A program made the translations under genes and the position numbers. Shown here one piece after another: positions 11,476-63,231 of a DNA stretch of 64,000 bases; position 1 is the stretch's first letter, and each line of letters opens with the position of its first letter. A model generated the notes under the pieces. It was not told the DNA's origin. It made no database searches and saw only the letters and a program-made list of their open reading frames with translations. The DNA is from Dendrobates tinctorius (taxonomy: Eukaryota): positions 72,044,001 through 72,108,000 of the forward strand of contig NW_027361738.1 in NCBI RefSeq assembly GCF_039654945.1. Reading direction: 5' to 3'.

Positions 11476-11569
11476 CAGTTCAGCAGTTTCAGTGGGGAAA
11501 GAAAAAAAAAAAAAGTATTTTCCCTGTAGTCTAATAGAGCGTTACATATTTTTACATAGCTTACTATTA

Positions 11570-29532: not shown

Positions 29533-29588
<56 letters not shown>

Positions 29589-30731: not shown

Positions 30732-30786
<55 letters not shown>

Positions 30787-42700: not shown

Positions 42701-44189
42701 CTAAGGGAGAAAGAGGAGGGACAGATGGACGGGCCGGAGCTCCCCTGAGGGAGAAAGAGGAAGGACAGATGGACGGGCCGGAGCTCCCCTGAGGGAGAAA
42801 GAGGAGGGACAGATGGACGGGCCGGAGCTCCCCTGAGGGAGAAAGAGGAGGGACAGATGGACGGGCCGGAGCTCCCCTGAGGGAGAAAGAGGAGGGACAG
42901 ATGGACGGGCCGGAGCTCCCCTGAGGGAGAAAGAGGAGGGACAGATGGACGGGCCGGAGCTCCCCTGAGGGAGAAAGAGGAGGGACAGATGGACGGGCCG
43001 GAGCTCCCCTGAGGGAGAAAGAGGAGGGACAGATGGACGGGCCGGAGCTCCCCTGAGGGAGAAAGAGGAGGGACAGATGGACGGGCCGGAGCTCCCCTGA
43101 GGGAGAAAGAGGAGGGACAGATGGACGGGCCGGAGCTCCCCTGAGGGAGAAAGAGGAGGGACAGATGGACGGGCCGGAGCTCCCCTGAGGGAGAAAGAGG
43201 AGGGACAGATGGACGGGCCGGAGCTCCCCTGAGGGAGAAAGAGGAGGGACAGATGGACGGGCCGGAGCTCCCCTGAGGGAGAAAGAGGAGGGACAGATGG
43301 ACGGGCCGGAGCTCCCCTGAGGGAGAAAGAGGAGGGACAGATGGACGGGCCGGAGCTCCCCTGAGGGAGAAAGAGGAGGGACAGATGGACGGGCCGGAGC
43401 TCCCCTGAGGGAGAAAGAGGAGGGACAGATGGACGGGCCGGAGCTCCCCTGAGGGAGAAAGAGGAGGGACACATGGACGGGCCGGAGCGCCCCTGAGGGA
43501 GAAAGAGGAGGGACACATGGACGGGCCGGAGCGCCCCTGAGGGAGAAAGAGGAGGGACACATGGACGGGCCGGAGCTCTCCTAAGGGAGAAAGAGGAGGG
43601 ACAGATGGACGGGCAGGAGCTCTCCTAAGGGAGAAAGAGGAGGGACAGATGGACGGGGCGGAGCTCCCCTGAGGGAGAAAGAGGAGGGACAGATGGACGG
43701 GCCGGAGCTCCCCTGAGGGAGAAAGAGGAGGGACACATGGACGGGCCGGAGCTCCCCTGAGGGAGAAAGAGGAGGGACAGATGGACGGGCCGGAGCTCCC
43801 CTGAGGGAGAAAGAGGAGGGACAGATGGACGGGCCGGAGCTCCCCTGAGGGAGAAAGAGGAGGGACAGGCAGGGTCATGCTCCCCTGGGCACAAGACAGA
43901 CAGCGTGACGCTCCCCTTGTGGGGGGAATAGCCAGAGCTCCTGTAGCGGGCAGTCCTTCTAGGGGGAGGGGGGATGGAGCTCCTCGAGGGGAGGGCTGAA
44001 TTTCTCCTATGGGGGAGGGGACTATAATGGAGGCAAAGGGAGAAAGCGAGGGGGAGGGGCCAGAGCCTGATGTTCCTCTGGGGGAGGGGAGAGAAGAAGC
44101 TGAGGCTGGAGTCACACAATGGCTGGGCGGCAGGATGTTGTTATCTTACCTACATCAGGATCGAAGGGGTTGGATGTGAAGAGAGGCAT
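16740..44189 (-). CDS. STAM: Signal transducing adapter molecule 1 (STAM1), full spliced gene, 14 coding exons, 525 aa
   Basis: Exons read by hand give [37 protein letters not shown]...[16 protein letters not shown]...[16 protein letters not shown] (UIM)...[19 protein letters not shown]...DPNWWKG (SH3)...YSQKALL*; exon lengths 40+85+76+96+147+91+187+95+89+88+55+154+161+214=1578 nt, frame preserved across all junctions. Confidence 0.97.
17859..18035 (+). mobile_element. 5'-truncated V-SINE-like element with L2-type tail
   Basis: V-domain-like core gagtttgtatgttctccccgtgtttgtgcaggtttcctccgggtactccggtttcctcccaca; ends gtgctatataa plus A-rich tail. Confidence 0.75.
18648..19731. repeat. Minisatellite of 30-bp and 21-bp units in STAM intron 13
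   Basis: ctctgacaacctgccccaggctccgacagc (30 bp) switching to ctccgacaacctgcccccagc (21 bp). Confidence 0.95.
20470..20630 (-). CDS. STAM: STAM exon 13 ([32 protein letters not shown]...)
   Basis: TAG acceptor after a 91-nt intron; donor AA|GTAACG gives correct phase 2 into exon 14; 161 nt. Confidence 0.85.
20722..20875 (-). CDS. STAM: STAM exon 12 ([41 protein letters not shown]...)
   Basis: CAG acceptor, GT donor, 154 nt; coiled coil and ITAM-like tyrosines. Confidence 0.93.
21490..21544 (-). CDS. STAM: STAM exon 11 ([17 protein letters not shown])
   Basis: TAG acceptor, GTAGGT donor, 55 nt. Confidence 0.94.
22780..22867 (-). CDS. STAM: STAM exon 10 ([29 protein letters not shown])
   Basis: TAG acceptor, GTGAGC donor, 88 nt. 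Confidence 0.94.
24010..24441. repeat. ~41-45-bp GC-rich minisatellite in STAM intron 9
   Basis: ggccatccttcccgctggtgggaggc(c)ngcgaat, about 10 copies. Confidence 0.93.
25162..25250 (-). CDS. STAM: STAM exon 9 ([29 protein letters not shown])
   Basis: Inside ORF 25123..25377; CAG/GT sites, 89 nt. Confidence 0.95.
26183..26277 (-). CDS. STAM: STAM exon 8 ([31 protein letters not shown]; SH3)
   Basis: CAG acceptor, GTAAGT donor, 95 nt. Confidence 0.95.
26766..26900. repeat. Perfect 56-bp inverted repeat with 23-nt spacer
   Basis: 26766-26821 is the exact reverse complement of 26845-26900. Confidence 0.95.
27290..28386 (+). mobile_element. L2 LINE 3' fragment (degenerate)
   Basis: [10 protein letters not shown] (YADD region), [42 protein letters not shown]; ends gcgctatataaa plus (taa)n. 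Confidence 0.88.
28786..28972 (-). CDS. STAM: STAM exon 7 (IELSLKEQ...[30 protein letters not shown]; UIM end and SH3 start)
   Basis: CAG acceptor, GTGAGG donor, 187 nt. Confidence 0.95.
30146..30236 (-). CDS. STAM: STAM exon 6 ([30 protein letters not shown]), GC donor
   Basis: TAG acceptor; ends AAAG|GCAAGT; 91 nt keeps frame with exon 7. Confidence 0.92.
30583..30729 (-). CDS. STAM: STAM exon 5 ([49 protein letters not shown])
   Basis: Inside ORF 30562..30807; CAG acceptor, GTAAAT donor, 147 nt. Confidence 0.95.
30733..30783. repeat. (TAA)17 microsatellite abutting the exon 5 acceptor
   Basis: Direct count, 51 nt. Confidence 0.95.
31517..32153 (+). mobile_element. Solo LTR (637 bp)
   Basis: Ends T(A)TCACGAT...ATCGTGACA, 5-bp TSD GCATG on both sides, internal TATATAA at ~31684. 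Confidence 0.8.
32436..32531 (-). CDS. STAM: STAM exon 4 ([32 protein letters not shown])
   Basis: CAG acceptor, GTGAGT donor, 96 nt. Confidence 0.95.
33515..33590 (-). CDS. STAM: STAM exon 3 ([25 protein letters not shown])
   Basis: CAG acceptor, GTAAGT donor, 76 nt. Confidence 0.95.
34182..34266 (-). CDS. STAM: STAM exon 2 ([27 protein letters not shown]; VHS)
   Basis: TAG acceptor, GTAAGT donor, 85 nt. Confidence 0.95.
34357..35627 (-). mobile_element. Tc1-like transposon remnant
   Basis: Terminus CACTGCTCAAAAAATAAAGGGAA next to TA; frameshifted transposase pieces [31 protein letters not shown]. Confidence 0.88.
35710..36200 (-). mobile_element. Second Tc1-like family, 3' end fragment
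   Basis: TA|CAGCTCTGGCAAAAATT terminus; minus strand [17 protein letters not shown]. Confidence 0.78.
36223..36706. repeat. ~43-bp minisatellite
   Basis: gactatgggatggaggatatgtatgatgggtatatgggcacgg, about 11 copies. Confidence 0.93.
39195..39463. mobile_element. hAT MITE (TAGTGATGAGC termini)
   Basis: TIR TAGTGATGAGC / GCTCATCACTG, TSD GATCCCAT / GACCCCAT; related pieces near 15790-15985 and 37535-37630. Confidence 0.82.
39824..39954. other. Assembly gap (N run) in STAM intron 1
   Basis: Run of N. Confidence 1.
41681..43867. repeat. 44-bp purine-rich VNTR, about 50 copies, STAM intron 1
   Basis: gagctcccctgagggagaaagaggagggacagatggacgggccg with few variants. Confidence 0.97.
44150..44189 (-). 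CDS. STAM: STAM coding exon 1 ([13 protein letters not shown])
   Basis: GCCGCCATG Kozak context; donor G|GTAAGA; 40 nt. Confidence 0.95.
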
Positions 44190-44480
44190 GGCGGCCGCCC
44201 CGGGAGCAGCAGCTTCCACACTACACGCGGTCTCCGGCGGCTCCTGCTGTGGCTCCGTCCTCCTCTAGCGCTGCATCAGGAGAGGCCACACAACGAGAGA
44301 TGCTGAGTCCCGAAGAGCTGAAGGACCTGTGGTGACGTCACTGTCATGTGATGAGTCACATGATTAGGAGGAGCCAGGCGCCGGACAAAATGCGCATGCG
44401 CGGCTTTTTGGGTAGTTCACACTGACTGCACAGCAGAGCTGGGAGTGTTTTGTGCTGTGTCCTGTGCGCGCAAACCTGTC
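44190..44480 (-). promoter_or_regulatory. STAM 5'UTR and proximal promoter (GC/CpG rich) with CRE, AP-1, M-box-like and NRF1 motifs
   Basis: TGACGTCA 44333-44340, TCATGTGA 44344-44351, TGAGTCA 44352-44358, GTCACATGA 44355-44363, TGCGCATGCGC 44391-44401, directly upstream of the ATG; TSS itself not determinable. Confidence 0.65.
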
Positions 44481-44530
44481 CTCTCCCGGGACGTGTATAT
44501 ATCACCTCCGCCTCTCCCCGGACACGTATA

Positions 44531-46152
44531 CAGTACAGACCAAAAGTTTGGACACACCTTCTCATTCAAGGAGTTTTCTTTATTTCCATGACTATGAAAA
44601 TTGTAGATTCACTCTGGAGGCATCAAAACTATGAATTAACACATGTGGAATTATATAATTAACAAAAAAGTGTGAAACAACTGAAAATATGTCTTATATT
44701 CTAGGTTCTTCAAAGTAGCCACCTTTTGCTTTGATTACTGCTTTGCACACTCTTGGCATTCTCTTGATGAGCTTCAAGAGGTAGTCACCGGAAATGGTTT
44801 TCACTTCACAGGTGTGCCCTGTCAGGTTTAATAAGTGGGATTTTTTGCCTTATAAATGGGGTTGGGGCCATCAGTTGTGTTGTGCAGAAGTCTGGTGGAT
44901 ACACAGCTGATAGTCCTACTGAATAGACTGTTAGAATTTGTATTATTGAAGGAAAAAGCAGCTAAGAAAAACGAGTGGCCATCATTACTTTAAGAAATGA
45001 AGGTCAGTCAGTCTGAAAAATTGGGAAAACTTTGAAAGTGTCTCCAAGTGCAGTGGCAAAAACCATCAAGCGCTACAAAGAAACTGGCTCACATGAGGAC
45101 CGCCCCAGGAAAGGAAGACCAAGAATCACCTCTGCTGCGGAGGATAAGTTCATCGGAGTCACCAGCCTCAGAAATTGCAGATTAACAGCAGCTCAGATTA
45201 GAGACCAGGTCAATGCCACACAGAGTTCTAGCAGCAGACACATCTCTACAACAACTGTTAAGAGGAGACTTTGTGCAGCAGGCCTTCATGGTAAAATAGC
45301 TGCTAGGAAACCACTGCTAAGGACAGGCAACAAGCAGAAGAGACTTGTTTGGGCTGAAGAACACAAGTAATGGACATTAGACCAGTGGAAATCTGTGCTT
45401 TGGTATGAGGAGTCCAAATTTGAGATCTTTGGTTCCAACCACCATGTCTTTATGCGACGCAGAAAAGGTGAACGGATGGACTCTACATGCCTGGTTCCCA
45501 CCGTGAATCATGGAGGAGGAGGTGGTGAGATGGTGTGGGGGTACTTTGTTGGTGACACTGTTCGGGATTTGTTCAAAATTGAAGGCATACTGAACCAGCA
45601 TGGCTACCACAGCATCTTGCAGCGGCATGCTATTCCATCCGGTTTGCATGTAGTTGGACCATCATTTATTTTTCAACAGGACAATGGCCTCAAACACACC
45701 TCCAGGCTGTGTAAGGGCCATTTGACCAAGAAGGAGAGTGATGGGGTGTTACGCAAGACAACCTGGCCTCCACAGTCACCAGACCTGAACCCAATCGAGA
45801 TCGTTTGGGGTGAGCTGGACCGCAGAGTGAAGGCAAAAGGGCCAACAAGTGCTAAGCATCTCTGGGAACTCCTTCAAGACTGTTGGAAGACCATTTCAGG
45901 TGACTACCTCTTGAAACTCATCAAGAGAATGCCAAGAGTGTGCAAAGCAGTAATCAAAGCAAAAGGTGGCTACTTTGAAGAACCTAGAATATAAGACATA
46001 TTTTCAGTTGTTTCACACTTTTTTGTTAATTATGATTCCACATGTGTTAATTCATAGTTTTGATGCCTTCAGATTGAAACTACAATTTTCATAGCCATGA
46101 AAATAAAGAAAACTCTTTGAATGAGGTGTGTCCAAACTTTTGGTCTGTACTG
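44531..46152 (+). mobile_element. Full-length Tc1-like transposon (1622 bp), defective transposase
   Basis: TIR begins CAGTACAGACCAAAAGTTTGGACACACCT, TA TSD; transposase ~44947-45994 with damaged start, in-frame stops (e.g. 45368-45370) and first catalytic D read as E (WYEESKF); QQDNG and SPDLNPIE present. Confidence 0.95.
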
Positions 46153-46417
46153 TATATCGCCTTCACCTCTCCCGGGATGTGTATATATCCCCTCTGCCTC
46201 TCCCGGGACGTGTATATATCCCCTCCGCCTCTCCCGGGACATGTACATATCCCCTCCGCCTCTCCCGGGACATGTATATATCGCCTCCATCTCTCCCGGG
46301 ACGTGTATATATGCCCTCCACCTCTCCCGGGATGTGTATATGTCTCCTCCACCCCTCCCGGGACGTGTATGTATCCTCTCCCGGGATGTGTATATATCCC
46401 CTCCCGGGACGTGTATA

Positions 46418-47655
46418 TGACGCGCCCCGGGGTACTCGGAGTCGGGCCCGTCGACTTCAATGGGGGACGGTGTCACGGCGGCTGGGACCCGATCCGTGGC
46501 CCCAGGCGGTCAAAGGCAATTATTTACGTGGTATTTAAGGAGATGGGAATAAAGTTTATGGTTGAATACGTGACACCACCTGTGGTAATCTGGTCAGAGG
46601 TGACCAGCGCTTCAGTGTCGCTTCTCTGGGATGGATGTTGGGCGCAGCTATGATGTTGTAGCCCTCCACAGGTAGGGCTGTAGTCCCAGGGCAGAATAGA
46701 TTAAGTTGTTGGAAGAGTTGGTAGATGTGGTATGGAGTAAAGGAGTGGCGCAGGAATAAAAAGGAGGACACAATCGCATGTAGTTCAATGGGCTTTACTC
46801 ACAGTCTGTCTGCAGTACAGATGCCCGCTTCAGTGCTGAGTCCTCCTGGTCAGGGGTCCAGTAAACTCCCAGGTAGATGAGTACACCGCTCCAACACTCC
46901 CTTTCAGTATGTGCCTTCCTAGGCTGTCTCACTGTACTGGTTTCCTCTCTTTCCTCCCTTTCCAGCACCTTCACAGTCAGTGTCCCAGGCTAGCTGCCGC
47001 AGGTCCTGTCAGAATTCGTCACTCAGGCGGTTCCTTGATCCTATATGGCTGCCTTTCTGGGAAGATACCTGTGGGATTCGCTGTGGCCCATACAGCAACC
47101 ACAACTGTCAGCTTGCATGTTAAGTTCGTTGTTTACTTCGCTAGGCTAGGGGCTGAGACCCTTCTGCCACCTGATTTCTTCTTCCACCTGATAGGAATTT
47201 CTAGAGTCCCACGCTGATTACTTTCTTTCCTCCCGGGAGCTTTCCCTCCCAGCCAATCTATCCGGCAGCTCCTCCTGACAGGAGTTGCTCCAAGCGCATC
47301 CTTACACCTGCTCTTCCCCTGAGGGAACTCTCCTCAACTCCTATCAAATCTCCCACTCTTTCTCCAAGCTCCGCCCACTCGCTGTTCCCTTTGGCTGCTC
47401 TACATCACTCCACTTTCTAAGCTCCTCCCCTTTTCCTACCATCCCCACTAGCTCCCCACACCCTTTCCTAGCCAGTCTGGGATGAGGCCATCCTCCCGTA
47501 GGGTACGCCCAGGTGCCCTGACTAGCTAGTGTGTGTGCATTGAGTGCAGTGTTAGGAGTGTGGTGAGGTGCCCCCATCTTACCTGGTCATGAGATACCAC
47601 ACCTCTGGATGAGATGCAGTACCTCTGTGGCGACAGGACCCGCAGGGGCGCCACA
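46418..47655 (-). mobile_element. Solo LTR (1238 bp), Gypsy-like, related to the LTRs at 55839/58973
   Basis: TG...CA ends, 4-bp TSD TATA; minus strand starts TGTGGCGCCCCTGCGGGTCCTGTCGCCACAGAGGTACTGCA like the other LTRs. Confidence 0.88.
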
Positions 47656-49116
47656 TATATATTCCCTCCACCTCTCCCGGGACGTGTACATATTCCCTCC
47701 ACCTCTCCCAGGACGTGTACATATCTCCTCCACCTCTCCTGGGACGTGTATATATCCCCTCCATCTCTCCCGGGACGTGTACATATTCCCTCCACTTCTC
47801 CCGGGACGTGTACATATCCTCTCCACCTCTCCCGGGACGTCTATATATCCCCTCCACCTCTCCCGGGACGTGTATATATCCCTTCTACCTCTCCAGGGAC
47901 GTGTATATATCCCCTCCACCTCTCCCGGAACGTGTACATGTCACCTCCACCTCTCCTGGGACGTGTATATATCTCCTCCATCTCTCCTGGGTAGAGTTGA
48001 GCGAAACGGGTCGAAAAATTTCAAAAGTCGCCGACTTTTGGCAAAGTCGGGTTTCATGAAATGAAACCCGACCCTAGGATGAGGTCGGCCACGAGGTCGG
48101 CGACTTACGCGCCAAAGTCGCGTTTCAAAAGTTTGTTTTGCGCTCTTTCAGCCAATCAGGATCCACAGACACTGTGGGCAACGTGATGACATAGGCACGG
48201 GTCACCACCATCTTTCAGAAGGGCATGCAAGTGATTGGCTTGCTTTGGTGGGCGTCACAGGGGGTATAAAAGGGCGTGCACGCCGACCGCCATCTTCTGC
48301 CGATCTCAGTATAGGGAGAGGTTGCTGCTGATTCTGTAGGGAGAGCGTTAGGCAGGGAAGAAGACAAAAAAACTGCTTCTGCTGCTAGCGATTTGGCCTG
48401 CACAACACACCAGTCACTGTGTGTGTAGTGCAAGGGAAGGCTATATAGTGGTGTATCAGTGGTGTTGGTTGTTGGGCTGCCTTCTAAGGCTTCCTGACAT
48501 TCCTGCATTGCTGTTTACCCACTGCTCCGCAAACTGCTTTTTTAAAAGCAATCCCAATTTTTTTTTTTGTCCTGCTGAGAAGAAAAAAAAACTGCTTCTG
48601 CTGCTAGCGATTTGGCCTGCACAACACACCAGTCACTATGTGTGCAGTGCAAGGGGAGGCTATATTGTGGTGTATCAGTGGTGTTGGTTGTTGGGCTGCC
48701 TTTTAAGGCTTCCTGACAGGATGGCATTGCTGTTTACCCACTGCTCTGCAAACTTCTTTTTTAAAAGCAATCCAATCTCCCTTATCCTCTAGTCACTTTT
48801 GTCACAGCTGTGCCATCGAGCCTGTGACATAGCGCTCAGATATCAGTGGGCCTCACACAATCCAAAAGTGTCCAGTGTCCACAAGTGTCTGCAGAAATTC
48901 AAAATCTCCCTTATCCTCTAGTCACTTTGGTCACAGCTGTGCCATCGAGCCTGTCACATAGCGCTCAGATATTCATTGGGCCTCACACAATCCAAAAGTG
49001 TCCAGTGTCCACAAGTGTCTGCAGAAATTCAAAATCTCCCCTGTCCTATAGACACCTTGTACCTTGTTTTACATTACTATATAGTTTGTTGGATTTTGTC
49101 TACATTTCTACCAAAA

Positions 49117-52100
49117 ATGAGGAAGGCTGGTGGAAGAGGCCGTGGAATTGGGCGGGGGTTGGCAGCTGGTAATGATGGTGTTGGTGGTGGATCTGATGGT
49201 AGTGGCAAGAGCAAAATAGGACCGAATGCAGGAGGTGTTGAGCCTGCGTCATCGTCTGGCTACATAAGGCCTCGAACGCTTAGTTTTCTAGGAGTTGGCA
49301 AACCGCTTTTAAAGCCAGAGCATCAGGAAAAAGTTTTGTCTTACATTGCTGACTCAGCCTCCAGCTCTATCGCCTCCTCTTCTTCAGTTGTAAAAAGTAA
49401 AAGCACTGAGTCGTCATTGGAGGCTCATGTTCATGAACCACACCTTTCCTTGTGTCCTTCACCCCAACCAAGATTGAAGGATGACGCAGGCCATACTACT
49501 GATTACTCCATGGAGCTGTTTTCACATACCATGCCTGGATTATCAAGTCAAATGGTGAATTACCCAGGCCAAGATGAATCTGACATGGAGTGCACTGATG
49601 CACAGCCGCTGATGGATGATTCTGCTGGTACATTCACTCAGAGCACTACATTGTCCTCGCAGTGTACAGAGCCAGATTCTGACCCTGATGAGACTCAGGT
49701 GCCCCTTCCCGCACACTATACCACCATACACGGTGACACAGAGGAAGGTGCACATGACATAGAAGAGGAGGTGATGGATGACCCAGTTGTTGACCCAGAT
49801 TGGCATCCATTGGGGGAAGAGGGTGCTGCTTCCAATAGCTCAGATGAGGAGCATCCACAGCAGACATCGACATCGCAACAGCTGTTATCTGGCAGGCCCG
49901 GAGCACTCCAAAGACAGGTTCCAAACATCAAAAGAGTTGCTGGACAGCTTGTCCAGAGGGTCAAAAGATCACAGCGTGCTAGGCCGCAAAATGTCTGCCA
50001 AAGTAGGAAGAGTGCAGTGTGGCACTTTTTTGACCAAAATCCTCATGATCAGGCCAAGGTTATCTGTAAGAAGTGCACAAAGACCTTTAGCCGAGGGAAA
50101 AATCTGAAAAATTTGAATACCAGTTGCATGCTTAGACATTTAACCAGCATGCACTTGCAAGCGTGGACACAACACCAAACCTCAAGTGCCACATGTGCAA
50201 CTGATCACAACGAAGGTAGTCAGCAACGCTACATTGTTTCCCCCACTGTAAGCCCACCGGTTAGCACAGCAGCAAATGTTGAGGTGTCGTTGCAAGGCCA
50301 CAGCAGTCAGGGAATCCCACTGTTATATCAACGAAAGACTGATTCTAGGCCATCAGAAAGAACACCAACTCCATCACCATCATCAACCCTCTCTCAGTCC
50401 GCCCTGTCCACCGCTACTTCCACCATATGCAGCTCTCAAGTCCAGCTCACCCTCCCAGACACTATGAGTAGGTCAAGAAAGTACTCAGTCTCTCATCCGC
50501 GTACACTGGGTTTGAACGCCCACATTGCCAAACTAATCTCGTTTGAGATGATGCCCTTTCGGTTGGTGGAAAGCACAGCTTTCCGCGAACTCATGGCCTA
50601 TGCAGTACCACGCTATGACCTACCCAGTCGCCACTTCTTCTCTCGCAAAGCCATCCCAGCCCTCCACCATCATGTGAAAGACCGCATTGTCCATGCACTC
50701 AAGCAGTCAGTGAGCGGAAAGGTGCACCTCACAACTGATGCATGGTCCAGTCGGCATGGCCAGGGCCGTTACGTGTCCATCACTGCGCACTGGGTTAATG
50801 TGGTGGATGCAGGGTCCACAGGGGACAGCGGTGGTGGGACAGTGCTGCCTAGCCCACGGTATAGGAAACAGTTGGCTGTAGGCGTTCGACCCTCCTCCTC
50901 CTCCTCCTCCTCCTCCTCCTCCTCCTCCAGAAGCGAAAGCTCGTCCACAGAGCGCAGTCGTACGAGCACTCCATCTGCAGCTGCCACTGTTGCACACGAT
51001 GTGTCCCCCTATCGAGCAGCTAGTGGAAAGCGTCAGCAGGCTGTGTTGCAGATGATGTGTTTGGGCGACAGACACACCGCCGAGGTGCTGGCCGAGTACT
51101 TGAAGCGACAAACTGAGTCATGGCTGGGCAGTGTACATCTTGAGGCAGGCAAGGTAGTTAGTGATAACGGCCGTAATTTTGTGGCAGCCATAGCCCTTTC
51201 AAAACTCAGCCACATACCTTGCTTGGCTCACACCTTGAACCTGGTGGTGCAGTGCTTCCTCAAAAATTATCCGGAGTTAACAGCCCTGCTCCAGAAGGTG
51301 CGAAGACTGTGCGCGCACATCCGCCGGTCGCCTGTACACTCCGTTCGTATGCAGAAGCTGCAGCGATTGCTCCACCTTCCCAACCACCGCCTCATTATCG
51401 ACATTGCAACAAGGTGGAACTCCACCCTGCACATGGTGGAGCGGCTGTGCGAGCAGAGGCAGGCCATAATGCATTTGTGGGAGGATACACGGCCAGGCAC
51501 TTTGAGAGCAGACATGGAGTTGACAGGTGTGCAGTGGTCGAAGCTGAAAGACCTCTGTAAAGTCCTTCAGTGTTTTGAGGAATGCACACGGCTGGTAAGC
51601 GCAGACGACGCCATCCTAAGCATGAGCATCCCACTTATGCGTCTGCTCATGCAATCTTTGACGCACCTTAAGGAGCAGGCGTCTGCAGCCAATGTTGATG
51701 AGGAGGAAGAGGAGGAGGGAATCCTTGATGACATTCAGCCATTGTCTGCTCAGGGACCTCTCCTGGACGAGGTGGAGGAAGAAGAGGAGGAGGAGGATGA
51801 TTACTTAGGGGAGGAGCATGCATCTCGTGGGGCAAGTGAAAATGTTGGCGTGGCAAGGTCTGGTACAGGGTTTGTGCGTGACTGGAGGGATGTGGATTTG
51901 CCAGAAAGTGCTCCTCCAACTAGCACTCGCAGTGCATCATTGACACCGGGAACATTGGCCCACATGTCAGATTATGCCTTGCAGATCCTAAAAAGGGACC
52001 CACGCATTGCCAAAATGATGAACGATGACGACTACTGGTTGGCCAGCATCCTGGATCCACGCTATAAAGGCAAATTACAAAACATCATGCCACAGGAGAA

Positions 52101-52656
52101 CCTTGACCTAATATTGGCTAATAAACAAGCAACTCTGGTAAATCGGTTGCTTGAGGCATTCCCAGCACACAGCAGCGGTGATGGTTCTCACACGAGCCGT
52201 ACGGGCCGGGGGCAGCTTGGCAGAGGTGTTCGTGGTGCACACAGCAGTAGTGGCGTTGGAGACAGGGGTTTCATGACAATGTTGTGGACTCATTTTTCAA
52301 GTACCGCTCACACAACTGGTAATACTGCATCGATGGAAAGTGACAGGAGACAGCAGTTGTCAACTATGGTTACAAACTACTTTTCCTCCCATATCGATGT
52401 TCTCCCACACAGGTCATTCCCCTTTGACTATTGGGCCGCTAAACTGGACACCTGGTCTGAATTGGCACAATATGCCTTACAGGAGCTCGCTTGCCCAGCT
52501 GGAAGTGTGCTATCGGAAAGAGTCTTCAGTGCAGCTGGATCAACAGAAAAAAGGACCCGTCTGTCAACCCAAAATGTGGATGATCTAACCTTCATTAAAA
52601 TGAACCACGCATGGGTTTCCAAGAATTTTGTCCCACCTTCCCCTGATGACACATAG
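49117..52656 (+). CDS. hAT transposase (ZBED-like), 1179 aa from first ATG, uninterrupted
   Basis: BED finger (SAVWHFF..CKKC..LRHLTSMH); LTTDAW, VSDNGRN, CLAHTLNL (CxxH), TRWNS, LDPRYK, dimerisation domain with SERVFS. Confidence 0.93.
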   Translation: MRKAGGRGRGIGRGLAAGNDGVGGGSDGSGKSKIGPNAGGVEPASSSGYIRPRTLSFLGVGKPLLKPEHQEKVLSYIADSASSSIASSSSVVKSKSTESSLEAHVHEPHLSLCPSPQPRLKDDAGHTTDYSMELFSHTMPGLSSQMVNYPGQDESDMECTDAQPLMDDSAGTFTQSTTLSSQCTEPDSDPDETQVPLPAHYTTIHGDTEEGAHDIEEEVMDDPVVDPDWHPLGEEGAASNSSDEEHPQQTSTSQQLLSGRPGALQRQVPNIKRVAGQLVQRVKRSQRARPQNVCQSRKSAVWHFFDQNPHDQAKVICKKCTKTFSRGKNLKNLNTSCMLRHLTSMHLQAWTQHQTSSATCATDHNEGSQQRYIVSPTVSPPVSTAANVEVSLQGHSSQGIPLLYQRKTDSRPSERTPTPSPSSTLSQSALSTATSTICSSQVQLTLPDTMSRSRKYSVSHPRTLGLNAHIAKLISFEMMPFRLVESTAFRELMAYAVPRYDLPSRHFFSRKAIPALHHHVKDRIVHALKQSVSGKVHLTTDAWSSRHGQGRYVSITAHWVNVVDAGSTGDSGGGTVLPSPRYRKQLAVGVRPSSSSSSSSSSSSRSESSSTERSRTSTPSAAATVAHDVSPYRAASGKRQQAVLQMMCLGDRHTAEVLAEYLKRQTESWLGSVHLEAGKVVSDNGRNFVAAIALSKLSHIPCLAHTLNLVVQCFLKNYPELTALLQKVRRLCAHIRRSPVHSVRMQKLQRLLHLPNHRLIIDIATRWNSTLHMVERLCEQRQAIMHLWEDTRPGTLRADMELTGVQWSKLKDLCKVLQCFEECTRLVSADDAILSMSIPLMRLLMQSLTHLKEQASAANVDEEEEEEGILDDIQPLSAQGPLLDEVEEEEEEEDDYLGEEHASRGASENVGVARSGTGFVRDWRDVDLPESAPPTSTRSASLTPGTLAHMSDYALQILKRDPRIAKMMNDDDYWLASILDPRYKGKLQNIMPQENLDLILANKQATLVNRLLEAFPAHSSGDGSHTSRTGRGQLGRGVRGAHSSSGVGDRGFMTMLWTHFSSTAHTTGNTASMESDRRQQLSTMVTNYFSSHIDVLPHRSFPFDYWAAKLDTWSELAQYALQELACPAGSVLSERVFSAAGSTEKRTRLSTQNVDDLTFIKMNHAWVSKNFVPPSPDDT

Positions 52657-53078
52657 GGTGACAGAAAAATGGCTTGCTTTGGTCCACCTCTTCCTGGGAC
52701 TTGACCTATTTCACCTTTTGCATCAGCTGAATGTCCAACATCAACATATGCCACTTTCTAAAACTCCCTAACTGTGCTGCCTCCCCCCCCCCCATGGCCG
52801 GGGTCACCACCTAGCGCACGACGCCGTGCGAGTGCCGTTGCCCTGGACAGGTGGGTAGGCCGACTCTTGGGCGCGGGCACTGGCACAGGGTCCCTCATAG
52901 TGCAATCAAGTGTCTCTGACGGTGGTGGTGCACACCCGCCGTCAGACACACCGCCGTACTATGAGGGGCCCAGTGCCAGTACCGACACCCACGAGTGGGC
53001 CCCCCTTGCTTGGGCAGGGCCCCAGCATTTGCAATCTTTACCTCTCCCTGCTCCTCCGCTGTGTAGTCTGGGCCATCA

Positions 53079-53480
53079 AATCCATACTGTGCCTGACACC
53101 GTCTGAGCCTGCCTCCTGATGTATAGACATATATTTTGAATGTGTACGCTATCCATACATGTTATCTGGGGATACGGTACCCTTTCTAACCTTTGTGCAA
53201 TCACGTGCAATCCATACTGGGCCTAACACCGTCTGAGCCTGCCTCCTGATGTATAGACATATTTTGAATGTGTACGCTATCCATACATGTTATCCGGGGA
53301 TACGGTACCCTTTCTAACCTTTGTGCAATCACGTGCAATCCATACTGGGCCTAACACCGTCTGAGCCTGCCTCCTGATGTATAGACATATATTTTGAATG
53401 TGTACGCTATCCATACATGTTATCTGGGGATACGGTACCCTTTCTCACCTATGTGCAATCACGTGTAATCCATACTGGGC
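53079..53480. repeat. Three tandem ~130-bp repeats inside hAT 3' region
   Basis: aatccatactgggcctaacaccgtctgagcc... starts at 53079, 53209, 53337, partial at 53467. Confidence 0.92.
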
Positions 53481-53590
53481 GTGAGAACGGCTGGCGAGCT
53501 GTTAAGCAAGCTACAGCACCTGTGGTTTTGCACACGTAAGTTTTTCATTTTTTCAGGAATGACGGTTAGGCCTAATTCCAGAACTGCGGT

Positions 53591-54061
53591 TGACCTGCAC
53601 TTACTGGGAAATCATTGTTCGCGGGTAATAATTGTAGTCAGTGATCCCCATCACTAACGTTGTTCAGCGGGTTATCTGCACCTGTAAGCGACAAACGCTG
53701 GCCTTTTCAGTGTAGCGCACATGCAGCCACGGACATGTAGGGCATGACACACCAGTTATTGGCCAATCTCATGTGCCAGAGCCTCACGTGTCACTCTAGT
53801 AAGCCGGACTCGGACCGCGGGGCATGACGGAGTCTCGTTCGTTAACGGAATTAAGCTTGCAATGTGTGCATCTGTTCTGTAGCTGGCATGGTTGAGGTTT
53901 CCCAGGTGGAGTCTAATTTAACTGTAGGCTCCACTCCTGGTGGTACCCTTCTGGACATTCCTTTAAGGTTCAGCTTTGCAACCATACTGCCCACGTAAAA
54001 CAAACACTTTGCCTTCATGAACGCTGTTTGGAGGGTCATGACTCGTGGGAATAACGCCGCC
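53591..54061 (-). pseudogene. Diverged 18S rRNA fragment (3' major domain) embedded in the hAT element
   Basis: Minus strand has colinear 18S blocks GGCGGCGTTATTCCC, AGTATGGTTGCAAAGCTGAA-CTTAAAGGAAT, ACCACCAGGAGTGGAGCCT, GGGAAACCTCA, TTAATTCCG-TAACGAACGAGACTC, GCGCTACACTGA, GTGATGGGGATC, TTCCCAGTAAGTGC-GGTCA, with substitutions and deletions. Confidence 0.88.
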
Positions 54062-55838
54062 CAATCAGTTAACCTGCTAGAGAGATCGTTCGTTGCTCCC
54101 AAGCATGACATCACACTCCCTAGGAAGAAGGTAATGCCACTGTGGCGACCGTACTCCTGGGGGCGACACAAGTGCACTGATGCCCAGCCACTGCTCGATG
54201 AATCTGCTGGTACATTGACCCAGACCACTACATTCCCCTCGCACGCTACACGACCTGAATCTGACCCTGATGAAACTCAGGTTACCCTTCCCATATACAG
54301 TTCCATCTTACACGGTGACAAAGAGGAAGCTGCAGATGAAAGTGCAGGTTCGGCCCACCCGCCATCAGACACCACCGTACTATCAGGGGCCCTGTGCCAG
54401 TGCCGTCGCCAACGAGTGGGCCCCCCCTGCTTGCTCAGGATCACAGCACTTGCAAAGTTGAAATACTGTGCAGTGAGATGGAAGATGGGGACGACGAGGA
54501 ATCCAGACAAGTACAGGGATTCCCTAGCGAGGAGACTTATTTGATTGTTTTCAATGTTGGGACAGCAATTTTTGGGGAGCACTATACTCTGGAGAATGAT
54601 AGATGGCGCCCACCATACACTGGAACATTCCAAAGGTGGACATCAGACACTGGAGCAGCATTTACAGGGCCCATTATACACTAGAGCATTAGAAATGGGG
54701 CCCATTATGTTTGGAGCATTATTTGGGCCCATAAGACAGTGGAGCTTCATCCATGGGGACCAACATATACTGTAGCATTATGTGGAGCTCATCATATACT
54801 GTTTCAAACATTATATGGGACCAATGATTCTGTATGGTGAAATAGATGGGCCTCGTCATGAGATGTAAAAAGTGAGGTATTTTTCATAGTACTATACCGC
54901 TATTTCTCTGCCGTATCGGAGCATGATGAGTTGTGGTATGTGTTAAAGGGGCGCTCTTTCGCCCAGGGCACATGAAAACCTGCAGCCAGCCCTCCCCCCC
55001 ACAACTTTAGCCAAATAACCCCCATTTTTCAGTGCGTAACTTGTATTATGAAGTTAATTAAGGTTGACAAGCTTAAGTAAGAAGAATTGATGCTTTTGGC
55101 ATTCAAATGGGCACTGTTGGTGTGTTTCCTGTCCTCCTCTCACTGCCGACTTTTATTCCCCATTGAGTTTCGTGTTTCGGGACGAACCCGACTTTTCCCT
55201 ATAATCGGACGATCTTGCTCGACCCGACTTTTGGAAAAGTCGGGTTTCACGAAACGAAACGCGACCCTAAAAAACCCAAAAGTCGCTCAACTCTACTCCT
55301 GGGACGTGTATATATCCCCTCCACCTCTCCCGGGACGTGTATATATCCCCTCCACCTCTCCCGGGACGTGTATATATCCCCTCCACCTCTCCTGGGACGT
55401 GTACATATCTCCTCTTCCTCTCCTGGAACGTGTACATATCACCTCCACCTCTCCTGGGACGTGTATATCTCTCCTCCACCTCTCCTGGGACATGTACATC
55501 TCTCCTCCACCTCTCCTGGGACATGTACATATCTCCTCCACCTCTCCCGGGACGTGTAAATATCTCCTCCACCTCTCCTGGGACGTGTACATATCTCCTC
55601 CACCTCTCCCGGGACGTGTACATATCTCCTCTACCTCTCCTGGGACATGTATATATCCCTCCACCTCTCCCGTGACGTGTATATATCTCCTCCACCCCTC
55701 CTGGGACATGTACATATCTCCTCCACCCCTCCTGGGACATGTACATATCTCCTCCACCCCTCCTGGGACATGTACATATCTCCTCCACCCCTCCTGGGAC
55801 ATGTACATATCTCCTCCACCCCTCCTGGGACATGTACA

Positions 55839-58800
55839 TGTTGCGCGCCTGAGGCTCAGTCGCCACAGAGGTACTGCACCTCCTCCTGAGGTGTGGTGCC
55901 CCACCATCCAGGTAAGGTGGAGACACCTGACCACACTCCAACACCTGCACCCCACACCACAAAGTAGTGTAGCAAAGCACCTACGGCAGCTCCCTGCTTG
56001 GAGTATAGCAAAGCACCCCTTGGTGGCTCCCTGCTTGGAACACGAAACGTGCTGGGAGGTGGGTGGAGTTAGTTTACATTACAAAGAGCGGGAAGAGTTT
56101 AGAGTAAATAGTTCAGTTGGTTAGAGATTTGGAGGGAAGAAGATTCCCGGAGAGAGGGATAGATGGATGGAAGTGCTGCAGCAGATCCCAGTGACCTGGG
56201 TCTGCTGGCACGGGAAAGGAAGAGAGGGAGAGCAACATAGACTGAAAGCCTGACTCTCCATAGAGAGGAAGATTAGTACGGAACGTGAGGAGTAAAAGAG
56301 AACAGAGGACGTGGGTTAGAAGAGAACCCTTCCTAGAAGTTCTAAGCGCAAGGCCGGTGCCTGGTCCTCGAGATTATATGGATACTAATGGTCCTGCAGC
56401 AGACACTGGAGGAATAGAAGTAGTGACCACTTTATTCCCACACAAGACTTGGGGGCACAACAGCAACTGGATAGCGAGCTGGGACTTAGTAGCAAGGAGT
56501 CACCGAAGCAGGCTACAGCTGTCTGCCGTACAAGTAGAGTTCATAGGAACATCGGACAGGAGGAACTCCAGTGTAACTCAGTACTAGGAGTACTTCATTT
56601 AAAGGCGCTATAAGAGGAGACGCTCAGAAAGGCATATGTTGGTGGAGTGCTGGAAAGGAGTATTCCATCTGGCCTGGAGGTTGACCGAGTCCCTGACCCG
56701 GAGGACACAGCATGGAGGCAGGCACCTGTTTGTACAACAGACTGTGAGTAAAGCTTTGGAACTACATGCCCTGGTGTCCTCCACTCATTCCTGCGAGAAC
56801 CTGCCCAGCACTGCCACATCCCTTGTGCCAGACACTACACCATCTACGTGTCACTTCTCCTACTCTGCTCCGGGACTACAGCCCTGCCTGTGGAGGGCTA
56901 TAATATCATTGCTGCACCACACCATCAGTCCCAGAGGATCTGTTTGCAGCGTCGGCTTACATCTCTATTGCCGAACACCACAGGTGGCGTCACAAACTAT
57001 TCATTTAATCAACTACATTCCACCATTCAATTCCCCTTTTTACATTTGGCGCCCAGGGCCAGGACCGGGTCACCGCTGCTGTGACACCTTCCCCTCTGAG
57101 TTGCCGGCCCGGTACCAAGTATTCCACAGCCCTGGGAGGGTGACCCAACTTGGCGTCACGCACAGGATGAGACCTGATGCCATCGGGTTCTGTGTGCCTA
57201 AGACTTAAATCTTTGAAATGTGCAGAAGACCCAATTTAATAGACTGTGAAATGAATGCTAGAAATGGCCGCTGGTGCGGTGAAGAAGGGCGTGACAATAT
57301 GGGTGGTCCTAAGAAAAGAGCGCGGACTGTCCTGGGCCTCCCCTGTCTGAACTTCTATGCGACAGCAACATGGCCTACCCCCCCCGAGGGGTTCGTATAC
57401 TGGCTTGGTATGGAGGAGTAGGAAGACGACGACGCCCTCAGAAGGAGGGGCGAGAGCCAGTGGCGGGAAGAGAGCAGAGGCAGGAAGAAGAACGCCAGAA
57501 TGCCATATTGGAAGGAGAAGGGAGGAGGCATGCGGAGCGCGAGGAGGTCGAGCTGAATCTCCTCGGCGCAATGGCTGAAGGCTCCGACCCCACTTCCGAG
57601 ATGACCCACCGACAGCTGGAGGAGGAGATTACCCGGCTAACACACCATCTGAGGCAGGAGGCATTATGGAGGATGAACTGGCAGCATGCCCCGGAGGGGC
57701 CTACACCTGCGGTACCCCAGTCACAGGTACCCGCAGTCGCTATACCGGGTCCTCTCCAGGCAGACCCTGTGGAGCCTGCGGCTGCTGCCGTACCATCGGC
57801 AGCATCTATAGTCCCCTCTCTGCCGTCACCACCGGAGGAGTTGTCTGAGACCCTGGGAGCTGAAGCAGGGGGAAGAGGAGCTCCCGCCTGGACCTGACGC
57901 GGCCGCGCAGGTCCCAATGGAGGCCCCCGTGGACCTGGAGCCGCTATCCGTTCCACTGCCGCCTCTGATATCTATTTGGGCAGTCACAACCACCACCGCT
58001 GCCACCAAACCCACACCAGAGCCGAGACGCCACCAGCAACTGTTGAAGTCACCACCCCTGCTGTACCTCAGGCAGCATCTTCAACCACTGCAATCGTATC
58101 TGGAGGACACCCAGAGCATCTCCCCTGGAAGAAGCCCAAGAAACCAGCTTTCAGAAACCCAGGAGGGGATCACTAGCCATACCCTTGATTTAAACTAACT
58201 TTTGTTGCCCAGGAGGGTATTAGCAAGTTTTCAGCTTTTCTATTTTTTTTCTATTTTTGATTATGATGTTTATTTGTTGATCCTGTTGTTGCCTAGTTTC
58301 ATTGGCAGCGTTCTTCTATTACTTGAACTGTGGAGATCATGGACGCTGAGTGATCCAGAACTGTAATTGTAAATAGTTTGCACCTCTTTAGGTGCTTTCT
58401 CTTGGTTTTACAAAGGAACCTTTCCCTTGGAACAAGGACTACCTCGTTATAAGGACATATCCAGACTTGATGGCCGGGCCAATGTCTACTATTTGCACTT
58501 ATGAATAATGCTTAGTATTTTTGAACAAGAAAAGTGATAATGTGTAGTAACAGTATTAATGACAGATTTTATAGGGTTCGATTGAGAAAGATATAGAGAA
58601 TGTTTTACAATACGTGAATAAAGATGTGAGAATTGAATAAAAGTATGTAGTTGACGAACCAGGTGCTGACGGTTGTCACTCATTAAGAAAGTAGAAAGTA
58701 TGACAGATAACAAAGGAAAGAAATGTGATGTTAGAAAATGTGTTACCCAAGCTGATAGTGAATTTGCTTCTATAGCATGTAAAAATTAGGTAGCATAACT

Positions 58801-60279
58801 TTAAATATAGAAAGACAGTTAAATTGTTTGTAACGTTCAAGAAACAGTGCCTCCCACATTGGGAAGTTTAGCATAAAACATGTTTATTATGCAATATAAA
58901 AATTTGTATGTTCCTGTATTGTCAACATTGATTCCTTTCAGCCCGTGGATGTGCTGTGTTTAACGGGGGGTATGTGGCGCCCCTGAGGCTCAGTCGCCAC
59001 AGAGGTACTGCACCTCCTCCTGAGGTGTGGTGCCCCACCATCCAGGTAAGGTGGAGACACCTGACCACACTCCAACACCTGCACCTCACACCACAAAGTA
59101 GTGTAGCAAAGCACCTTCGGCGGCTCCCTGCTTGGAGTATAGCAAAGCACCCATTGGTGGCTCCCTGCTTGGAACACGAAACGTGCTGGGAGGTGGGTGG
59201 AGTTAGTTTACATTACAAAGAGCGGGAAGAGTTTAGAGTAAAGAGGTCAGTTGGTTAGAGAGTTGGAGGGAAGATCCCCGAAGAGAGGGATAGATGGATG
59301 GAAGTGCTGCAGCAGATCCCAGTGACCTGGGTCTGCTGGCACGGGAAAGGAAGAGAGGGAGAGCAACATAGACTGAAAGCCTGACTCTCCATAGAGAGGA
59401 AGATTAGTACGGAACGTAAGGAGTAAAAGAGAACAGAGGACGTGGGTTAGAAGAGAACCCTTCCTAGAAGTTGTAAGCGCAAGGCCGGGTGCCCGGTCCC
59501 CGAGGTTATATGGATACTAATGGTCCCGCAGCAGACACCGGAGGAATAGAACTAGTGACCACTTTATTCCCACACAAGACTTGGGGGCACAACAGCAACT
59601 GGATAGTGAGCCGGGACTTAGTAGCAAGGAGTCCCCGAAGCAGGCTACAGCTGTCTGCCGTACAAGTAGAGTTCATAGGAACATCGGACAGGAGGAACTC
59701 CAGTGTAACTCAGTACTAGGAGTACTTCATTTAAAGGCGCTATAAGAGGAGACGTTCAGAAAGGCACATGTTGGCGGAGTGCTGGAAAGAAGTATTCCAT
59801 CTGGCCTGGAGGTTGACTGAGTCCCTGACCCGGAGGACACGGCACGGAGGCAGGCACCTGTTTGTACAACAGACTGTGAGTAAAGCTTTGGAACTACATG
59901 CCCTGGTGTCCTCCACTCATTCCTGCGAGAACCTGCCCAGCACTGCCACATCCCTTGCGCCAGACACTACACCATCTACGTGTCACTTCTCCTACTCTGC
60001 CCCGGGACTACAGCCCTGCCTGTGGAGGGCTATAACATCATTGCTGCACCATACCATCTGTCCCAGAGGATCTGTCTGCAGCGTCGGCTTACATCTCTAT
60101 TGCCGAACACCACAGGTGGTGTCACAAACTATTCATTTAATCAACTACATTCCACCATTCAATTCCCTTTTTACATTGGGCGCCCAGGGCCACGGACCGG
60201 GTCACCGTTGCTGTGACACCTTCCCCTCTGAGTTGCCGGCCCGGTACCAAGTATTCCACAGCCCTGGGAGGGTGACCCA
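55839..60279 (+). mobile_element. Non-autonomous Gypsy-like LTR retrotransposon (LTRs 55839-57147 and 58973-60279)
   Basis: Two ~1.3-kb direct repeats with TG..CA ends, 4-bp TSD TACA, PBS TGGCGTCACGCACAGGAT at 57151-57168 (complementary, 1 mismatch, to the 3' end of a tRNA-Ser(CGA) as I recall it), purine tract AACGGGGGG before 3' LTR; no pol in the 1.8-kb interior. Confidence 0.93.
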
Positions 60280-63101
60280 TACATATCTCCTCCACCCCTC
60301 CTGGGACATGTATACTGTATATCATCTCCTCTTCTCCCCGGATGTGTATATAGCCCCTCCACCTCTCCTGGGACGTGTATATGTCCCCCCACCTCTCCTG
60401 GGACATTTTTTTTTTCTAAGAGCCAGAACTTTTTTTTTTTATTACCATATAAAATACAGTAAAAAAAACAAAAAAAACAATTTAAGTTGCAATGAAATTA
60501 GGAAAGGCCCAACAATTCTGCTGATTTTTAGGTTTAGTATAATTACAGCGTTCCCTTTGAAGTGTGGACGAGCGGCGCTTTGTTCTGTGAGTCAGGCTGG
60601 TTGTGGTGACGCTGATAAAAAAAAAAAAAAAAAGGTATAAAACTTTCTACTTGTTTTACCAGCTAATAATTATAAAATAAAAACTTGAGAAAAAAAGTTT
60701 GCCTTTCTCTGCAACTCACTTTCCATTTTTCTGGGGTTGATATTTGCAGGTTGAGCTGTAGTTTTTATTGATATCATTTTCAGCTCCTTTTTCATTTTAT
60801 TTATTCCGTCTTTTTGATTTATTTTTACATCCTGGCTTTCCTCGTACCAGATAAGTATCTGTATATGTTATCAGTTACCAAATATGTTACTTTTGTATTT
60901 TGTTAAGAACTTGCTATTTGCACTACCGAAAAATCTAAACTTTTGTGTTTTTGTTTTTTTTTTTTTTTAATTTGGAGGATGCATTTTAATTTTTACATTT
61001 TTTTTAATATCTTTTAACATTTTGAGTTATTCCATTTAGGGGACATATAGAGGGTGGTGGTGTAACATTGCAGCCAATGAATGGAGGATTAGTGCACATG
61101 CCAAAGGGGCCTTTCAGAGTCCAGCTCTCAGGATGGATGGGGCTTCGAAGTTTTAGGACAGGTGATACCTTTCAGTGTTGGAAATAGCCTTTTCAGATTT
61201 GACTCATCCGAGGTTGCAGATGACACCGTAGAAAGGCGAGCAGCTTGTGAAGGAGCAGCTGAGGCCGGGCTGTAATGAGCGTGCATTGTTCTGCGGCTGA
61301 GTCACAGACATCATGTGCTCCCGTCACACGCTTTCTTTTGATCACCGGAGTAAATGTCAGTCACTCTGATTTGCACATGACAAATATGGCTGAATACGTC
61401 ACTGCAGAAAAAAATCCTCAAAAGCACAAAGAAAAACTGATACAGTGGCACAGTGTTAACACAACAACCTCTCTCTGCATGACATTAACATTACACCAAG
61501 AAGGAAAAGTTGTGGGATGATGGAAATCACAGGAGAGCTAGACGTGCTGCTCACAGTAGCATGAGCAACATGCGCCCTTGTGTTATTGCGTTGATGGGAC
61601 ACTGCAAAAATGGCGTAAGCAATGGTTCCACAACCAAATCAATGTGACATTGAGCTGTTGGTGTACTAGGAGTGAAGACTATTGGGGTCCGGCCAGCACA
61701 TTGTGCCGCGTTACACCATAGTCCCAATGTGACATTCCGTTGTGAAGGCTTCTCTTTATGGCGTTGGACCTGTCGTCCAAGACAAGAACAGAACTCATTG
61801 CTGAAGAGGAAAGACCTCCGTTTCATCCTCCGGTCTCCGTCTGTAGATCACGAGGCAATGCTACAAGTTTACATGTACAGCAGATACCGGACTTTTTTTT
61901 TATCAGCTTATATGTATGATGTATCCTACAATAAATAACTCCATGTATATACCTATACTATCCCACCCTATTACTATCTCATTATGCAGCCATACAGTAT
62001 TGATTATATACTTTAATACATGGGGGGCACAGTGGGGTTCAATACATTATTCTATCATTGATAACTATTTTACTGCGGGGAGTTATTATCTACAGTGGGG
62101 ATTTCTGAGTTCGCCCTACCGCGCGCAGGTCCTCTGATGACGGTGGCAGCGCATGCGCAGATTGATGAAATTGATTGCCGATGATGATACTGTGCATGCG
62201 CCACCTTCGGCGCCATTTTGCTGTAGTAAAGAAAAAAATTGCTCCAGCCACAAGACGTCGGCGCCGGCACTTGCGCAGCTGCTTCTATTGGAACGCGATA
62301 GATGCCACTGCACATGCGCCGCCTTCGGCACCATTTTGTTGTAGTTAAAATTGTTTTTGCTGCAGCAACAAGAAGCCAGCGGAGGCGCTTGCTCAGTAGC
62401 ATCTACCGGAACACATTAGATGCTACTGTGCAGGCGCAGCCGGCGTCGCAATTTTAATGAAGTGATTTTTTTTTTTTTATTAAACAAGAAAATATAATAG
62501 GCACTAACTGATACTTGATAGTGTGTAGGCGCCGCCATTTTGGTGGTCACTTTTTTTTCAAATACACACATTAGAATATTCAATATGTAAATTAGAGGGC
62601 AGGTCAGTGAGGGATCAGTGACCTGTCAGAAGCCATACTGGTGAATACCTAATCAGAGCACCACATGAAGACCCCCCCCACAGACCACCCCGGGGCACGA
62701 GCATATCATTAACTAAAAACTGAAAATAAAGATTAAAAAAGAAGCACAAGATGGATTTCATCACCAGGTATCATTGTAAACAGTATGATGGCGCTGACCT
62801 GACACTGTCTGTAGGTTACTGAGCACAATCCTGCTGACAGGTTCCCTTCAAAGAATTAGAGTCATCATTAATGAAATAGAAAAATGAATTAAGTGACCTG
62901 GAGATGTGTGGAAAAAACGATCCTGCTCCAATTTGAAGATGTGATGTATTTCTATTCAGTAAAGTTCTTGCATTCAATGGTTGTAGGTGATGATCAATAG
63001 TTCACAATAGATGTCCAGGAGCGCGTGCTCAGCTCCTCTCTGTGTATAATGTCCCCAGGCAAGGGAGGTTTAATGAGTAGATGTAGTTCTTATCCCATTA
63101 A

Positions 63102-63231
63102 GGCCGGGGTCACACTTGCGAGAAAATCGCATGAGTCTCGTGTCTCAACATTCCGGCCCCGTGTGCCGGCGGCAGTGCCGGGCATTGAGAAGCGAGACTC
63201 GTACGGGTTTCTCGCAAGTGTGAACCCGGCC
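63102..63231. mobile_element. Harbinger-type MITE, same family as 9187-9381
   Basis: GGCCGGGGTCACACTTGCGAG...CTCGCAAGTGTGAACCCGGCC, TAA TSD. Confidence 0.85.

Follow-up and report, generated by a model that had tools for sequence, protein, structure and literature searches.

The 64-kb stretch of the Dendrobates tinctorius genome analyzed here (contig NW_027361738.1, positions 72,044,001 to 72,108,000) is referred to below as the window, to which counts and comparisons with the rest of the window are confined. It carries STAM1 on the minus strand, with the ATG at 44189-44187, and, upstream of this gene, a minisatellite of 31-bp units that is interrupted by a Tc1-like transposon, a solo long terminal repeat (LTR), a hAT transposon, and an LTR retroelement. 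The coding part of STAM1 exon 1 (44150-44189, minus strand) was read and translated from the ATG and provides 13 residues, followed by a GT splice donor. Two further exon pieces, at 34181-34297 and 30565-30831, matched the VHS domain structure PDB 3LDZ (3e-14 and 3e-24, respectively) when exons were searched one by one, unjoined. The 5′ untranslated region and core promoter region (44190-44477, minus strand) is CpG-rich, with a GC content of 0.58 and a CpG observed/expected ratio (o/e) of 0.66 for 44100-44477. It contains TGACGTCA at 44333-44340 and GCGCATGCGC at 44392-44401, which we take to be CRE-like and NRF1-like, respectively.

The minisatellite and its four insertions

The minisatellite spans 44478-60406 and starts 289 bp upstream of the STAM1 ATG. 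Tandem Repeats Finder (TRF) recovered pieces of the 31-bp array at 46153-46431, 47659-47991, 55296-55839, and 60326-60404, and the first 1.7 units are located at 44478-44530. When the four elements and one copy of each target-site duplication (TSD) were removed, an array of 1306 bp or ~41 units remained, in which all four interrupted units were restored to exactly 31 bp. The elements added 14,623 bp in total and split the array side by side, none being nested in another. The resulting segments are A1 (44478-44530; 1.7 units, with the Tc1 TSD TA at its end, 44529-44530), A2 (46153-46417; units 2-10, two of which are 23 bp long, with TA on its left and TATA on its right), A3 (47656-47991; units 10-21, ending in the hAT TSD CTCCTGGG at 47984-47991), A4 (55296-55838; units 21-38, the last five being identical), and A5 (60280-60406; units 38-41). 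An earlier note on this DNA, made from the sequence, had described an array of ~1.3 kb located ~290 bp upstream of the ATG, in which a Tc1 (TA), a solo LTR (TATA), a hAT (CTCCTGGG), and an LTR element (TACA) had inserted next to each other, each duplicating a piece of the unit, with the array resuming in phase and ~14.6 kb added; this description held throughout, and all four insertions were found at the places claimed. The possibility that the array is a component of one of the elements was ruled out, as the unit is present in no element and every junction is a clean TSD. We found no copy of the 31-bp unit outside the array, either in the rest of the window or in the Ranitomeya variabilis loci searched.

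The array units change in composition with distance from the promoter. Specifically, units with CCCGGG and ACGTG are replaced by units with CCTGGG and ACATG, and these CpG-decayed variants dominate the distal half of A4. CpG o/e drops steadily along the array, from 1.26 on the promoter side to 0.28 in the most distal part, a gradient that hints at the margin of an unmethylated CpG island, where such a pattern would be expected.

The Tc1-like element (44531-46152, plus strand) is 1622 bp long, has the ends CAGTACAG...CTGTACTG, and is flanked by the TSD TA at 44529-44530 and 46153-46154. Its terminal inverted repeats (TIRs) of 272 bp carry CAG...CTG ends, and the two arms (44531-44802 and 45886-46152) are 94.5% identical. 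The transposase returned the Pfam domains HTH_Tnp_Tc3_2 (6e-12), HTH_32 (1e-9), and DDE_3 (4e-7). The TA duplication, the TIRs, and the combination of HTH and DDE domains place the element in Tc1/mariner, in the subgroup with inverted and direct repeats (IR/DR). Three in-frame stops interrupt the transposase, which otherwise reads in one frame; the resident copy is thus decayed and inactive. No further copies of this Tc1 family were found in the rest of the window or in the R. variabilis loci.

A probable second Tc1-like event was detected one unit beyond the LTR retroelement, where unit 39 (from 60303) is 36 bp long and would be 31 bp without an extra CTGTA at 60315-60319. The resulting TACTGTA (60313-60319) occupies the same central TA that the resident Tc1 used, and its CTG corresponds to the Tc1 terminus. 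Canonical excision footprints of Tc1 elements, including Sleeping Beauty (SB), read TACAGTA or TACTGTA (PMC6943129), and we regard the heptamer as a probable excision footprint, most likely left by a fifth transposon event that has since been reversed. A slippage duplication was ruled out as the source of the extra 5 bp, because CTGTA copies no adjacent bases. The motif TACWGTA, which matches both a Tc1 footprint and a TSD followed by the first bases of a TIR, occurs 19 times in the window, compared with 6.4 ± 2.4 times in dinucleotide shuffles (0 of 100 shuffles reached 19); thus, the heptamer alone is weak evidence, and the footprint call is carried by the change in unit length together with the exact site. 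This excess suggests that many old Tc1 ends or footprints are scattered across the STAM introns. One of the TACWGTA occurrences is a back-to-back TACTGTACAGTA at 35325-36.

Both of the LTR insertions have TG...CA termini and 4-bp TSDs. The solo LTR (46418-47655, minus strand, 1238 bp) is flanked by TATA at 46414-46417 and 47656-47659, and the spacing of array copies across it is 1242 bp, i.e., 1238 + 4, such that phase is restored. The full element (55839-60279, plus strand, 4441 bp) is flanked by TACA at 55835-55838 and 60280-60283. Its LTRs, at 55839-57147 (1309 bp) and 58973-60279 (1307 bp), are 96.6% identical, with a Kimura two-parameter divergence of 0.030, or 0.020 without CpG transitions. 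Substitution rates of 1-3e-9 per site per year, assumed from general knowledge, would put the insertion at roughly 3-15 million years ago. The interior of 1825 bp yielded no Pfam domain of gag or pol in its open reading frames (ORFs), and a protein word search returned no relatives of an internal ORF of 175 amino acids. The element is therefore non-autonomous, and we assign it only to the LTR retroelements, without a superfamily. A TGG-starting TGGCGTCACGCACAGG that resembles a primer-binding site starts 4 nt past the 5′ LTR, and the purine run AACGGGGGGTA, a candidate polypurine tract, immediately precedes the 3′ LTR.

The solo LTR, which lies in the opposite orientation, is 81-86% identical to those of the full element across the initial ~115 bp; internal patches match at 72-86%. 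From this similarity the two appear to be related families of one LTR lineage rather than members of the same family. Accordingly, the four independent hits from several superfamilies proposed in the earlier note stand as four insertions from three superfamilies, but two of them share a lineage. A BLAST search of the rest of the window and of 88 kb from R. variabilis found no further copies of the LTR family. The solo LTR is aligned with the direction of STAM transcription, now at a distance of ~2 kb upstream of the promoter, and could act as an alternative STAM promoter or enhancer.

The largest insertion is the hAT element (47992-55295, plus strand, 7304 bp), bounded by the TIR TAGAGTTGAGCGA, of which 13 of 14 bases match the other end. 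Its 8-bp TSD CTCCTGGG is present at 47984-47991 and 55296-55303, and unit phase is again restored. An ORF at 49117-52656 (plus strand, 1179 amino acids) is fully open and contains zf-BED (6e-12) and Dimer_Tnp_hAT (3e-5) Pfam domains. The 8-bp TSD, the short TIRs, the BED finger, and the dimerization domain together identify a member of the hAT superfamily, which may still be mobile, given its open frame and intact TIRs. An exact-protein look-up of the transposase gave no recorded match, and its nearest relatives, at 65-70% identity, come from R. variabilis and Ranitomeya imitator. At the nucleotide level, relatives with both ends were present in two R. variabilis loci (L001, ~5228-14510, and L002, 2979-17365) at 77-81% identity. 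The 3′ non-coding region of the element contains a fragment of 18S rRNA (53562-53992, minus strand, 430 bp; Rfam SSU_rRNA_eukarya, 90.8 bits, model positions 1118-1666). This fragment lies within ~1.1 kb of the hAT (query positions 5044-6180) that is unmatched in the R. variabilis copies, and hence looks like a lineage-specific capture.

Target sites within the repeat unit

The insertion sites of the Tc1, the solo LTR, and the LTR element coincide when projected onto the unit. In all three the TSD ends at the identical unit offset, 12, within GGGACGTGTAYA^TAT (GTG-TAYA^TAT). The Tc1 duplicated the central TA of GTATATAT, and each LTR insertion duplicated the TAYA tetramer ending in that TA. 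The unit core in which they lie, GT(A/G)TA(T/C)ATAT, alternates between pyrimidines and purines and occurs in ~40 copies in the array. Consequently, four of the five events (the Tc1 insertion, the Tc1 footprint, the solo LTR, and the LTR element) used the same core at one offset; the insertion site of the hAT is in the GC-rich portion of the unit. The proposal that the TA-rich segment of the unit served as a target was thus upheld, with the footprint at the same TA.

These sites agree with target preferences in the literature. SB prefers the palindromic ATATATAT centered on TA (PMC8934666), and Drosophila elements of the gypsy clade generate 4-bp TSDs of the type TRYA/TATA (PMC3276498). TRYA begins at 7.8% of array positions, so that both LTR TSDs would conform to it by chance with a probability of ~0.006. 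The array is enriched 3.4-fold in TRYA, 19-fold in TATATA, and 48-fold in GTATATAT-type sites over the remainder of the window. Moreover, it makes up 21% of the 6.3-kb neighborhood as it was before the insertions, but accounts for 60-65% of TRYA/TAYA sites and 90-100% of TATATA-type ones in that neighborhood.

The hAT site followed a different pattern. The earlier note had credited the unit with a hAT-compatible octamer, which was not borne out: CTCCTGGG matches the consensus nTnnnnAn at T2 only, with G rather than A at position 7, and nTnnnnAn sites are unenriched in the array (0.9-fold). The clean TSDs of related R. variabilis copies, CTAGGGAC and TTTACAAC, match at both positions. For all hATs, this consensus is a weak one (PMC3276498, table).

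Two other long variable number tandem repeats (VNTRs) in the window, at 18647-19732 and 41680-43868, are uninterrupted according to TRF. The earlier note had correctly reported them as free of insertions, but they are unfair controls, since they contain 1 and 10 TA, respectively, and zero TRYA, and were thus incapable of receiving three of the four insertions. The second has a 44-bp unit and spans 2.2 kb (50 copies, 97% matches, GC 65%, almost no TA). It occupies the first part of STAM intron 1, beginning ~280 bp past exon 1, and is as promoter-proximal as the 31-bp array.

Origin of the insertion cluster

We consider it somewhat probable that a neutral spacer array beside the CpG-island promoter of STAM1 collected five separate transposon events, the placement of which was shaped by target motifs. 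The ~40 copies of the GT(A/G)TA(T/C)ATAT core would have offered a good target to two of the three element types. SB-like Tc1 transposases require TA and favor ATATATAT, and the core supplies such sites, assuming that the frog family has a similar preference. Likewise, the TAYA duplications made by the two related LTR elements would reflect integrases with a preference like that of the Drosophila gypsy clade. The unit sequence fails to explain the hAT hit, for which a promoter-proximal bias of hATs, or chance, seems likelier. The insertions would have persisted because the gene needs nothing in the array, which is presumably neutral. We read the locus as an ordinary type of event in an unusually clean example, for which no dedicated landing-pad function is required.

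Several observations weigh against this interpretation. The putative target preference of the LTR family was derived from two sites, both in one repeat, and with ~2.4 TRYA sites per unit, the shared offset adds little once a TRYA preference is assumed; the TRYA enrichment of the array is itself only 3.4-fold. The position of the Tc1 carries little information, because these elements require TA and every TA in the unit falls inside a 6-bp stretch. In the window and the R. variabilis loci, no additional members of the LTR and Tc1 families and no 31-mer outside the array were found on which a preference could be tested. Additionally, nested fragments may be present in the 3′ region of the hAT, where ~1.1 kb is unmatched in the Ranitomeya copies. 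Furthermore, the locus was chosen for looking unusual, and the insertion count does not clearly exceed expectation, as it falls within chance for a genome of ~75% repeats.

The last of these points can be expressed as rates. The D. tinctorius genome contains 74.72% repeats, with 11.3 million annotations, 2.2 million of which are LTR, Tc1, and hAT (PMC11152451). From these totals, 0.45-1.8 LTR/Tc1/hAT pieces are expected per 1.3 kb, the probability of four or more is 0.001-0.11, and ~1,500 to 130,000 genome-wide bins of 1.3 kb would reach at least four pieces by chance. Transposon density within the window could not be gauged from self-similarity, which was uninformative, as only two families of miniature inverted-repeat transposable elements (MITEs) recur; a hand count gave at least ~0.27 palindromic MITE-like structures per kb, a lower bound. 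The side-by-side layout was evaluated separately. Under uniform targeting in the locus, the probability that no later insertion fell within the up to 14.6 kb of resident elements is 0.001-0.024, depending on insertion order.

Pure chance is the most serious of the rival explanations, although we judge it rather unlikely. Here, with repeats forming about three-quarters of the genome, 1.3 kb of dispensable DNA was hit repeatedly, and the shared site arose from trivial needs, i.e., TA and AT-rich flexible DNA. The number of bins expected to reach four pieces is in its favor, and the TACWGTA excess suggests heavy Tc1 traffic throughout. On the other hand, neither the absence of later insertions from the resident elements nor the occurrence of TRYA at both LTR TSDs is readily expected if insertion was random, and the genome-wide expectation sets a ceiling, given that the array presumably arose more recently than typical unique DNA. 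It is a smaller likelihood, in our estimation, that the open, unmethylated promoter of a housekeeping gene drew in several superfamilies whatever the unit sequence. The proximal array segments are indeed CpG-island-like (CpG o/e 0.79-1.26, GC 55-58%), a bias toward transcription start sites and CpG islands has been published for Tol2 (a hAT), piggyBac, and gamma-retroviruses (PMC8151067), and such a bias would cover the hAT hit that unit sequence leaves unexplained. However, the distal units are CpG-decayed (o/e 0.28-0.33), like methylated DNA, and integration of SB-like Tc1 elements is near-random relative to genes (PMC8151067). The 44-bp VNTR lies just as near to the promoter and has received no insertion, an observation that favors sequence rather than chromatin as the principal influence.

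A stronger version of targeting holds that the 31-bp family is a true multi-family hotspot, the TAYATA core of which attracts Tc1 and TRYA-type LTR elements many-fold above background, perhaps assisted by a non-B structure in the C-rich half, and which acts as a sink at CpG-island edges that spares the core promoter; we give this little credence. The landing pad of the earlier note survived in part, as the TA-core target motif and the side-by-side layout favored it, but the hAT octamer and the VNTR controls did not. We view an assembly artefact, in which repeat-rich reads were misjoined and the four elements do not truly lie in one array, as highly improbable. Arrays and young transposons are difficult to assemble, and the window does contain a run of N elsewhere (39824-39954), but eight of eight junctions are exact, with TSD lengths proper to each superfamily and 31-bp units restored. 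The LTR element also leaves the succession of unit variants unbroken, in that unit 38, which it splits, is of the same variant as units 34-37.

If placement by target motifs in dispensable DNA is correct, the minisatellite would have multiplied a weak target motif ~forty-fold and thereby concentrated insertions of unrelated elements harmlessly beside a housekeeping promoter. The two LTR sites would then also give a hint that the TRYA habit, so far described for the insect gypsy clade, extends to an LTR lineage of vertebrates. Filled, excised, and empty copies of the target coexist in one array, a natural archive from which transposon activity in poison frogs could be ordered and dated. Compared with the earlier note, the shared offset 12, the Tc1 footprint in unit 39, the relatedness of the two LTRs in opposite orientations, and the CpG gradient are new.

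Relation to known systems and further observations

The mechanisms involved are all known already, and the phenomenon resembles target-motif preference combined with tolerance in dispensable DNA. The Tc1-like element shares with SB the TA TSD, the CAG...CTG ends, the IR/DR-type TIRs of ~270 bp, and the TACTGTA footprint, and the insertion at the central TA of GTATATAT is a 7/8 match to the preferred octamer ATATATAT. Unlike SB, it occurs naturally in a frog and has decayed, its frame containing three stops; a target preference is extended to it by analogy. For SB100X, only 2-3% of insertions are at the full octamer (PMC8934666).

The TSDs of the two LTR elements, TATA and TACA, are both TRYA with pyrimidine-purine alternation, as in the gypsy clade of Drosophila (gypsy, Burdock, opus, and HMS-Beagle), and the opposite orientations of the two frog LTRs are as expected for a palindromic target. 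They differ in that the frog elements lack gag and pol and that the TSD flanks are G and T, not A and T, in a comparison comprising two sites only. Class I endogenous retroviruses likewise make 4-bp duplications. The hAT resembles Ac, hobo, Hermes, and Tol2 in its 8-bp TSD, short TIRs, BED finger, and dimerization domain, and it inserted a few hundred bases (in pre-insertion distance) upstream of a CpG-island promoter, as would suit a Tol2-like bias. It departs from the hAT consensus in the G at position 7 of CTCCTGGG.

More broadly, microsatellite-specific long interspersed nuclear elements, R1/R2 in ribosomal DNA, and Ty1/Ty3 upstream of tRNA genes represent strict targeting by one family, and clusters of PIWI-interacting RNAs are functional traps with a small-RNA output. 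The array is like such repeat-targeting or safe-haven elements and trap loci in having several insertions in a repetitive, dispensable target beside a gene. Unlike them, it involves three superfamilies with loose preferences and no evident function.

Finally, we noted further structures with hAT-like ends. In R. variabilis, the L001 locus contains 18 kb (15976-34260) bounded by the hAT-like TIRs TAGAGATGAGCCA and CCGCTCATCTCTA with the exact 8-bp TSD TTTACAAC, which may represent a very large hAT-type element or paired ends around other DNA. In the window, short palindromic MITE-like elements recur at 9184-9393 and 63099-63246, and at 15891-15987, 37532-37629, and 39193-39249, with another at 32784-32950. 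The hAT-like TIRs of some of these, TAGAGATGAGC and TAGTGATGAGC, are similar to the termini of the large hAT.

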